A stretch of DNA of 64,000 nt, taken from NCBI GenBank assembly GCA_964270895.1, contig OZ185442.1; one strand, given 5' to 3'. The translations under genes and the position numbers were made by a program. The DNA comes from Podarcis filfolensis (Eukaryota). Under the pieces are notes generated by a model. The model was not told where the DNA came from, made no database searches, and was given only the letters and a program-made list of their open reading frames with translations. This document shows, in pieces, positions 59,567-59,832 of this stretch; position 1 is the stretch's first letter, and every line of letters starts with the position of its first letter.

Positions 59567-59680
59567 GATGCACCACGTGCTTCCGCAAGGCTTCCTGATT
59601 TGCAGGAGTTCCAAAGTGCCAGGACTGTTAAAGTCAACCCTGATGCCCCCCAGAAGAATGCCCGCTTTTTAGCTCTGGAA
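59567..59680 (+). CDS. MTHFSD: MTHFSD exon 3a (DAPRASARLPDLQEFQSARTVKVNPDAPQKNARFLALE)
   Basis: cag| acceptor, |gtgagt donor, 114 nt, phase 0-0, no stops; paralogous to exon 3b. Confidence 0.85.
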
Positions 59681-59718
59681 GTGAGTATGCTGCTTTCCCC
59701 ACTTTCTCCCTGGCGCAG

Positions 59719-59832
59719 GGATCTTTCAAGATGAGCAGCTCCGTCCAAGCATGGGATGTCTTTGATAAAGCCAGGGAGGTCAAGGTGGATCCTGACAAAC
59801 CCCTGGAGGGAATCCGGCTGGCTGCGCTGCAG
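59719..59832 (+). CDS. MTHFSD: MTHFSD exon 3b ([38 protein letters not shown])
   Basis: Polypyrimidine + cag| acceptor, |gtaacc donor, 114 nt, phase 0-0; [11 protein letters not shown] matches the human-type sequence as recalled. Confidence 0.9.

Follow-up and report, generated by a model that had tools for sequence, protein, structure and literature searches.

Lizard MTHFSD carries a tandem pair of 114-nt exons separated by 38 nt, probably orthologous to the mutually exclusive pair known from the human gene

The window, i.e. the whole 64,000-nt stretch of contig OZ185442.1 of Podarcis filfolensis that was analysed, contains the 5′ coding exons of the gene MTHFSD on its plus strand. The coding part of exon 1 (56395-56425, 31 nt) runs from the ATG to CCCG and ends in phase 1 at a gtaatg donor; its spliced translation is coherent, and the product resembles lacertid N-termini of the type MERAQQTGSPG (protein P0236). 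Exon 2 (58185-58288, 104 nt, donor gtatga) was matched at 100% by tblastn, and is 74-77% identical to exon 2 of lamprey and toadfish. Two exons of equal length then follow. Exon 3a (59567-59680, 114 nt) has the acceptor ..aaaacag, ends in GAA before the donor gtgagt, and encodes an NPDAPQ motif; its translation, DAPRASARLPDLQEFQSARTVKVNPDAPQKNARFLALE, recurs unchanged in isoform X2 of Podarcis raffonei (P0170, residues 56-93). A 38-nt spacer (59681-59718), made up of the 3a donor gtgagt, a pyrimidine-rich tract and the cag of the next acceptor, separates it from exon 3b (59719-59832, 114 nt, acceptor ..ggcgcag, CAG before the donor gtaacc), which includes an invariant 12-letter core and whose peptide differs at a single position from its counterpart in isoform X1 of P. 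raffonei (P0177, residues 56-93). A 79-nt intron (59833-59911) leads to exon 4 (59912-60025, 114 nt, phase 0-0), and exon 5 (91 nt) lies at 61892-61982. The 79-nt intron is near the low end for vertebrate introns (its counterparts measure 617 nt in finch, 1951 nt in lamprey and 4940 nt in toadfish), and exons 3a, 3b and 4 of the lizard fit together within 459 nt.

Since exons 1 and 2 add up to 135 nt, 3a and 3b are both in phase 0-0. Both are free of stop codons, each is preceded by its own AG and followed by its own GT, and either one gives an open, coherent protein, so that the coordinates and translations bear out what the first-pass annotation of this DNA had claimed for the interval between exons 2 and 4. 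The intron that joins 3a to exon 4 measures 231 nt and has 3b inside it. That annotation had also claimed that the 38-nt gap would shift the frame if retained, which holds: 38 leaves a remainder of 2 on division by three, and translation through the spacer meets a TGA 18 codons past the end of 3a. The frame is kept if both exons are skipped, or if both are spliced in, each being 114 nt long. The idea that 3a has a strong donor and 3b a weak one was dropped, both donors fitting the 9-base consensus at 7/9 positions.

Upstream of exon 2, the interval 56426-56533 is a candidate for an extended or alternative first exon. The P. muralis isoforms P0198, P0199 and P0009 show ..LAKRMLCTQNANPWHLRCAK joined to exon 2, a segment that matches approximately 56474-56533 of the window, after which a GT donor is found. 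When the ATG at 56395 is read on to 56533 the frame stays open (139 nt, phase 1), the second half being out of the frame of the P. muralis proteins; this mismatch suggests an indel between the two species.

The best database match of the lizard gene was the P. muralis MTHFSD isoform P0009, which agrees with lizard exons 2, 3a and 4 and is one residue off in exon 5. Identity to P0009 is 98% for isoform X2 of P. raffonei and 87% for X1, and the small differences between the lizard gene and the lacertid proteins fall in exons 1 and 3b. The Pfam domain PF01812 was found on P0009, P0170 and other matches, and an RRM on many of them. When the AlphaFold2 model of P0170 was submitted to Foldseek, the top matches were 1YDM, 3HY6, 2JCB, 1WKC and 1SOU (target TM-scores 0.61-0.74), and a profile of full-length orthologues found the human MTHFSD RRM, 2E5J, at 4e-20; in the lizard the RRM exons fall past the end of the 64-kb window. 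Upstream, the minus strand carries two forkhead ORFs, each in a single exon, at 49520-51145 (−, 542 aa) and 25121-26293 (−, 391 aa); both match Pfam PF00250 with E about 1e-40, and both are divergent from MTHFSD. In the human genome the neighbours of MTHFSD at 16q24.1 are FOXC2 and FOXL1, and the lizard arrangement is consistent with a FOXC2/FOXL1-like cluster next to MTHFSD. The MTHFS-fold N-terminal domain, the C-terminal RRM and the forkhead synteny identify the lizard gene as the MTHFSD orthologue.

The introns contain several repeats. A SINE-like element of approximately 350 nt (ggtaaagggacccctgaccattaggtccag...), recognised by eye, is present in two copies of the same orientation, at 57680-58040 in intron 1 and at 60740-61070 in intron 4. 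ORFs with RVT_1, from LINE-type retroelements, were seen at 62463-63935 (−), in the MTHFSD intron after exon 5, and at 5853-7919 (−). The intron between exons 2 and 3a holds two inverted repeats: a 27-nt hairpin with 89% complementarity at 59347-59420, about 150 nt upstream of 3a, and a pair of 35-nt arms, 469 nt apart, at 58538-59076, which flank a tandem duplication of 63 nt. These inverted repeats are probably parts of transposable elements.

The peptides encoded by 3a and 3b are identical at 13 of 38 positions. Their local BLOSUM62 score was 59, as against 18.3 ± 3.9 for shuffled sequences, and none of 20,000 shuffles scored as high; no other stop-free window of 38 aa within the 64 kb reached a score of 40 or more against either exon. 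The resemblance is thus beyond chance and the two exons are clearly paralogous, in agreement with the initial claim. The lizard pair also shows the neighbouring position, equal length, equal phase and peptide homology by which clusters of mutually exclusive exons (MXEs) were delimited by Hatje et al. (2017).

A corresponding pair has been described in human, where Hatje et al. (Mol Syst Biol 13:959; PMC5740500, Dataset EV2) list it as an 'annotated MXE', cluster 1051. The human exons, both of 114 nt and phase 0-0, lie on the minus strand of chromosome 16 (GRCh37), the upstream one at 86585785-86585898, encoding GASHAAEQLPRLQAFKTARTIKVNPDAPQKSARFFVLE, and the downstream one at 86585639-86585752, encoding 38 residues; the dataset enters 'true' under both 'Confirmed mutually exclusive' and 'Confirmed', and the pair is conserved in 16 of 18 mammals (PMC5740500). 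From these coordinates the human spacer is 32 nt. The lizard pair resembles cluster 1051 in lying at the orthologous position of the orthologous gene, in the length and phase of its exons, and in having the NPDAPQ exon upstream and the DPDKPLEG exon downstream. The lizard and human peptides are identical at 24/38 (upstream exon) and 21/38 (downstream exon) positions, and both spacers are very short, that of the lizard being 6 nt longer. The original claim of a mutually exclusive pair whose spacer is too short for an intron is therefore supported by a human orthologue confirmed as exclusive, with an even shorter gap (PMC5740500). In Human Protein Atlas tissues (Dataset EV6 of the same survey) the two human exons have Gini values of 0.120 and 0.123, and their expression peaks at 104.5 and 114.5, both in testis (PMC5740500). 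Such low Gini values and similar testis peaks indicate that the human forms are broadly co-expressed, without a tissue switch.

The MTHFSD exon switch is consequently already known: the human orthologue has been published, validated and annotated, and the lacertid isoforms are in RefSeq. Conservation in Hatje et al. (PMC5740500) is given for 18 mammals only, and the available part of that survey does not name MTHFSD under steric interference; the extension to lamprey and teleosts and the series of spacer lengths come from the present analysis. No study of the two MTHFSD isoforms was apparent in the literature that mentions the gene, and no published statement of the age of the switch, of a spacer series or of a functional difference was found there or in the available portions of the supplements to the two most relevant surveys. 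What is new here is incremental: an age that reaches back to the vertebrate stem, a monophyletic 3b and a series of spacer lengths.

A profile built from 3a and 3b, run against 1.84 billion representative proteins, gave 243 matches that fall into two sharp classes, one with V-K-V-N-P-D-x-P-Q and the other with V-K-V-D-P-D-K-P-L. Pairs of RefSeq models of identical length that differ only across this exon were found in P. raffonei (X1 with 3b and X2 with 3a, 406 aa each, differing only in residues 56-93), in the toadfish Thalassophryne (X1 and X2, 444 aa each) and in the sea lamprey (X1 with 3b and X2 with 3a, 362 aa each), in line with the prediction of two same-length isoforms. Among lacertid proteins in RefSeq and Ensembl, 3a is present in P0170, P0236 and P0009, and 3b in P0177, P0198 and P0199; one or both forms also occur in frogs, a shark, turtles, birds, monotremes, marsupials and placentals. 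It had been stated at the outset that the human reference carries the DPDKPLEG form and the mouse reference the NPDAPQ form. This is half right, and would at best describe which isoform is treated as canonical: those forms do exist in the respective species, but both forms are on record for each of them: mouse has P0039 (3a) and P0042 (3b), while human has P0272 (3a) and the 3b exon of Dataset EV2 (PMC5740500), P0059 having the same 3b peptide. Other combinations are annotated as well. In the squamate isoforms P0198 and P0199 (P. muralis) and P0021, 3b is joined directly to exon 5, with the 114-nt exon 4 skipped in frame, and forms that skip both versions of exon 3 and join exon 2 to exon 4 are annotated in lamprey (P0156; isoform X6, 324 aa), Varanus (P0306) and elephant shark (P0325).

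For RNA, a search for Logan fragments joining exons 2, 3a and 4 returned none from lizards; fragments of both forms were found from mouse, rat and other sources. An indirect proxy was used in addition, in which the contigs of sequencing runs were scored for 30 sampled 31-mers of the interval 59537-59862. The sample comprised 14 runs from four studies, 12 bearing the species label of this lizard and two a second label, their RNA nature being a guess (marked 'RNA?'). The share of sampled words expected is 0.28 if one exon is present, 0.57 (168/296) if both are present without genomic boundaries, 0.80 if 3a, spacer and 3b are continuous, and 1.0 for unspliced sequence. The shares observed ranged from 0.27 to 0.63 (0.40-0.63 in the contigs of the same species), with 9 of the 14 runs, from three studies, at 0.50-0.63, and none reached 0.80. 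By this word-share argument, the values are consistent with both exons being present in the spliced RNA of the same samples.

These data bear on the possibility that 3a or 3b survives as a decaying remnant of an old duplication and no longer enters functional mRNA, which would leave the lizard with what is effectively a one-isoform gene. Such a reading could appeal to the acceptor of 3a, which has a weak polypyrimidine tract: the pyrimidine share there is 0.40, while the last 25 nt of the spacer, before 3b, reach 0.76. The acceptor of 3a is the weaker one in all four species compared (3a/3b shares of 0.40/0.76, 0.52/0.80, 0.64/0.72 and 0.56/0.64). Nevertheless, in lizard, and also in the genomic loci of finch (L003), toadfish (L002) and lamprey (L001), both exons are intact, stop-free and flanked by AG and GT; the conservation of each exon among orthologues is at least as high as the resemblance between 3a and 3b (17-25/38 for 3a and 19-25/38 for 3b between species, 12-20/38 for 3a against 3b within species); both forms are represented among the lacertid RefSeq and Ensembl proteins; and in the nine runs mentioned above the RNA contigs carry about twice the words that one exon would supply. 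Decay of either exon is therefore considered highly improbable.

Even less probable is that transcripts normally carry 3a and 3b side by side, the spacer being either excised or, in species where it keeps the frame, read through, giving a protein with a tandem duplication of 38 aa. Gene models that join or read through both exons do occur, in Takifugu (P0004), Bagarius (P0012), Enoplosus (P0285), Chloebia (P0238) and Lerista (P0193), as well as in P0005. Their sources, however, are genome annotations in GenBank (with one RefSeq model), ORF calls from Logan and one model flagged 'LOW QUALITY', rather than transcripts, and they look like annotation artefacts. Moreover, read-through in the lizard leads to a frameshift and a stop, none of the 14 RNA runs attains the share expected of continuous sequence, and the human pair is marked as confirmed mutually exclusive (PMC5740500).

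One exon per mRNA being the favoured reading, the length of the spacer deserves attention. Comparison of the loci by tblastn recovered both exons and allowed the spacer to be measured: in genomic sequence it is 38 nt in the lizard, 63 nt in both finch and toadfish, and 115 nt in lamprey (L001, 3767-3881), with 32 nt in human as derived above. The gene models and ORF calls with in-frame read-through, a sample biased to multiples of three, gave spacers of 27, 36, 42, 45, 51, 54, 63 and 72-75 nt; their translations all begin with VS (GTNAGN) and end with Q (CAG). Measured or inferred in this way, spacer lengths in the sampled jawed vertebrates all fall within 27-75 nt, against 79 nt to 4.9 kb for the intron that leads from 3b to exon 4. 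Human introns have a length threshold near 65 nt, and the shortest with demonstrated splicing measure 43, 49 and 56 nt, those of 43 and 49 nt being G-rich special cases (PMC4463651). At 38 nt the lizard spacer lies below these values, as the first-pass annotation had held when it placed the gap under the usual minimum for a vertebrate intron.

The signals within the spacer point in the same direction. The sole plausible branch A in the lizard spacer, position 59701, stands 20 nt away from the donor of 3a and 17 nt away from the acceptor of 3b, in the context cccAc, which is not the yUnAy consensus; a branch point anywhere inside the 38 nt would lie no more than some 30 nt beyond the donor, short of the roughly 50 nt below which steric interference is assumed. 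In the human survey, 57 MXE clusters (9%) are assigned 'potential steric interference' on the basis of a donor-to-branch-point distance of <50 bp (PMC5740500), and the lizard pair falls under the same criterion. Since the spacer is short and pyrimidine-rich and its candidate branch A so close to the donor, its excision as an intron is judged very unlikely, and U1 and U2AF/U2 would have to share approximately 38 nt.

The best-known parallel is that of alpha-tropomyosin (TPM1), in which exons 2 and 3 were reportedly found by Smith and Nadal-Ginard in 1989 to exclude each other through the proximity of the branch point. The intron between the two TPM1 exons has the length needed for excision; its branch point, however, is shifted to the donor side, and the choice of exon is strongly tissue-specific. 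The lizard pair is similar in that the downstream branch point, here the candidate A, would be too near the upstream 5′ splice site. It differs in that all 38 nt of the spacer taken together fall short of a workable intron, and the human MTHFSD exons, in place of a tissue-specific choice, are both broadly expressed. The layout of the toadfish spacer, with its only CTAAC 14 nt from the 3a donor, resembles that of TPM1 exons 2 and 3.

The mechanism we propose for the lizard is as follows. The 38-nt spacer would have to house both the 3a donor, to be bound by U1, and the branch point and polypyrimidine tract of 3b, to be bound by SF1, U2AF and U2. As no branch point would be available at the approximately 45-50 nt from the 3a donor that the spliceosome needs, splicing of 3a to 3b would be blocked, and the occupancy of one site would probably exclude that of the other. 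Two routes would then be left, one in which exon 2 is joined to 3a and 3a to exon 4, with 3b removed inside the 231-nt intron, and another in which exon 2 is joined to 3b, with 3a removed inside an intron of 1430 nt. Each mRNA would accordingly include either 3a or 3b, giving two proteins of the same length that differ only in 38 residues. Transcripts retaining the spacer would be predicted targets of nonsense-mediated decay (NMD) through the frameshift and early stop. Spliced double inclusion would stay in frame, so that NMD is not the safeguard against it.

Exclusivity could instead be mainly non-steric, through regulated splicing factors that compete with each other, RNA structure or selection at the level of the protein fold, the short spacer being a by-product of the duplication. 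Lamprey would fit this, since it keeps both annotated isoforms with a potentially intronic spacer of 115 nt, and so would the 63 nt of finch and toadfish and the 75 nt of one fish-like contig, lengths in the range at which the shortest human introns are spliced (43-56 nt; PMC4463651). In addition, exon 3 encodes core secondary structure, and a doubled unit would, judging from the models, probably not fold. At 38 nt, or 32 nt in human, however, no vertebrate spliceosomal intron of ordinary composition is known to be excised (PMC4463651). The spacer has also stayed at ≤75 nt in jawed vertebrates while the flanking introns span 79 nt to 4.9 kb, which suggests that its shortness is maintained, and the toadfish arrangement places the sole CTAAC very close to the donor. 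A mainly non-steric origin of exclusivity is thus regarded as unlikely, if less so than the decay of one exon, and steric hindrance, inferred from spacer length, as the likeliest explanation for amniotes and teleosts. In lamprey steric exclusion is not assured, because the spacer is 115 nt long and its CTAAC lies 55 nt away from the donor of 3a, and a further factor may play a part there; this spacer, which is very C-rich, could in principle be excised.

The duplication is old. In the sea urchin locus (L004) a single 114-nt exon with the same boundaries takes the place of the pair, and the single exon of urchin and scallop is identical to 3a at 18-22/38 positions and to 3b at 13-17/38. The NPDxPQ motif is shared by 3a, by the single exon of urchin and scallop, and by one bacterial homologue, a Halalkalibacterium protein with VKVNPDSPQ that carries the NCBI name 5-formyl-THF cyclo-ligase. 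In a maximum-likelihood tree of 22 exon 3 peptides, all nine 3b copies, including that of lamprey, lay beyond one branch of length 1.49 with 100/100 support, and the 3a copies grouped with the invertebrate exons; with 38 columns only, this tree leaves the relations within the 3a and 3b groups unresolved. Taken together, the position of the lamprey 3b across that branch and the grouping of 3a with invertebrates point to a single duplication before the split of cyclostomes and gnathostomes, and support 3a as the ancestral-like copy and 3b as the derived one. The earlier proposal that 3a is ancestral-like therefore agrees with the urchin and scallop identities, the tree and the bacterial motif, whereas the accompanying estimate that the switch is at least amniote-old, although right as a minimum, was too modest, since lamprey and teleosts have both exons. 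Many ENA/Logan proteins of approximately 150-170 aa (P0290-P0310), about 60% identical to the translation of exons 2, 3a and 4 and all with NPDKPQ, were also encountered; these presumably come from MTHFSD-like genes of invertebrates or protists in environmental assemblies.

As a whole, we think it probable that the lizard pair is the orthologue of the known mutually exclusive MTHFSD exons, that it goes back to the tandem duplication of an ancestral 114-nt exon before lampreys and jawed vertebrates separated, and that one exon is used per mRNA by virtue of a steric spacer.

The consequences for the protein were explored by modelling both isoforms with AlphaFold2. Mean pLDDT was 82.5 for the 3a isoform (P0170) and 81.5 for the 3b isoform (P0177). 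Over residues 56-93 the two models gave the same fold, in which two short helices come first, followed by a strand (75-78), a loop (79-81) and another helix (82-93), the pLDDT of this block being 87-98; the two isoforms are thus predicted to share their fold. Within the 5-formyl-THF cyclo-ligase-like domain, exon 3 accounts for strand beta-2 with the NPDxPQ loop after it, for the pair of short helices in front of them and for the helix behind. Residues invariant in both forms include F70, K77, P80, D81, R88 and L92, while the forms differ at N/D79, A/K82 and Q/L84 and over most of the first two helices, 25 residues in all. Pfam and NCBIfam scans of the bare 38-aa exon peptides, which are too short for this purpose, gave no match; when profiles were compared with solved structures, alignment was confined to the RRM and the GxRxGxGxGxxD motif, exon 3 obtaining no residue mapping to the ligand contacts of MTHFS. 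In human MTHFS structures, the loop that follows the equivalent strand carries a pterin-contacting glutamate. On a putative residue correspondence with this loop, we hypothesise that the two isoforms differ in the ligand loop. In that case the two forms of the protein could recognise different ligands.

A more far-reaching scenario can be put forward tentatively, as possible though short of probable. According to it, the switch would have been in place in the vertebrate stem, more than 500 million years ago; 3b, born of a single duplication, would have diverged fast and then frozen, with 3a retaining the NPDxPQ motif shared from bacteria to animals; a spacer of ≤75 nt would have hard-wired exclusivity in jawed vertebrates, with a looser arrangement in lamprey; and the two isoforms could differ in ligand specificity.

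MTHFSD offers a clean and very old tandem-exon switch in which the length of the spacer may itself be the device of exclusion, and the series from 115 nt in lamprey to 27-75 nt in jawed vertebrates amounts to a natural experiment on the evolution of steric exclusion. For MTHFSD, an RNA-binding, MTHFS-like protein of unknown substrate, conserved isoforms that differ in the probable ligand loop would provide a handle for biochemistry.
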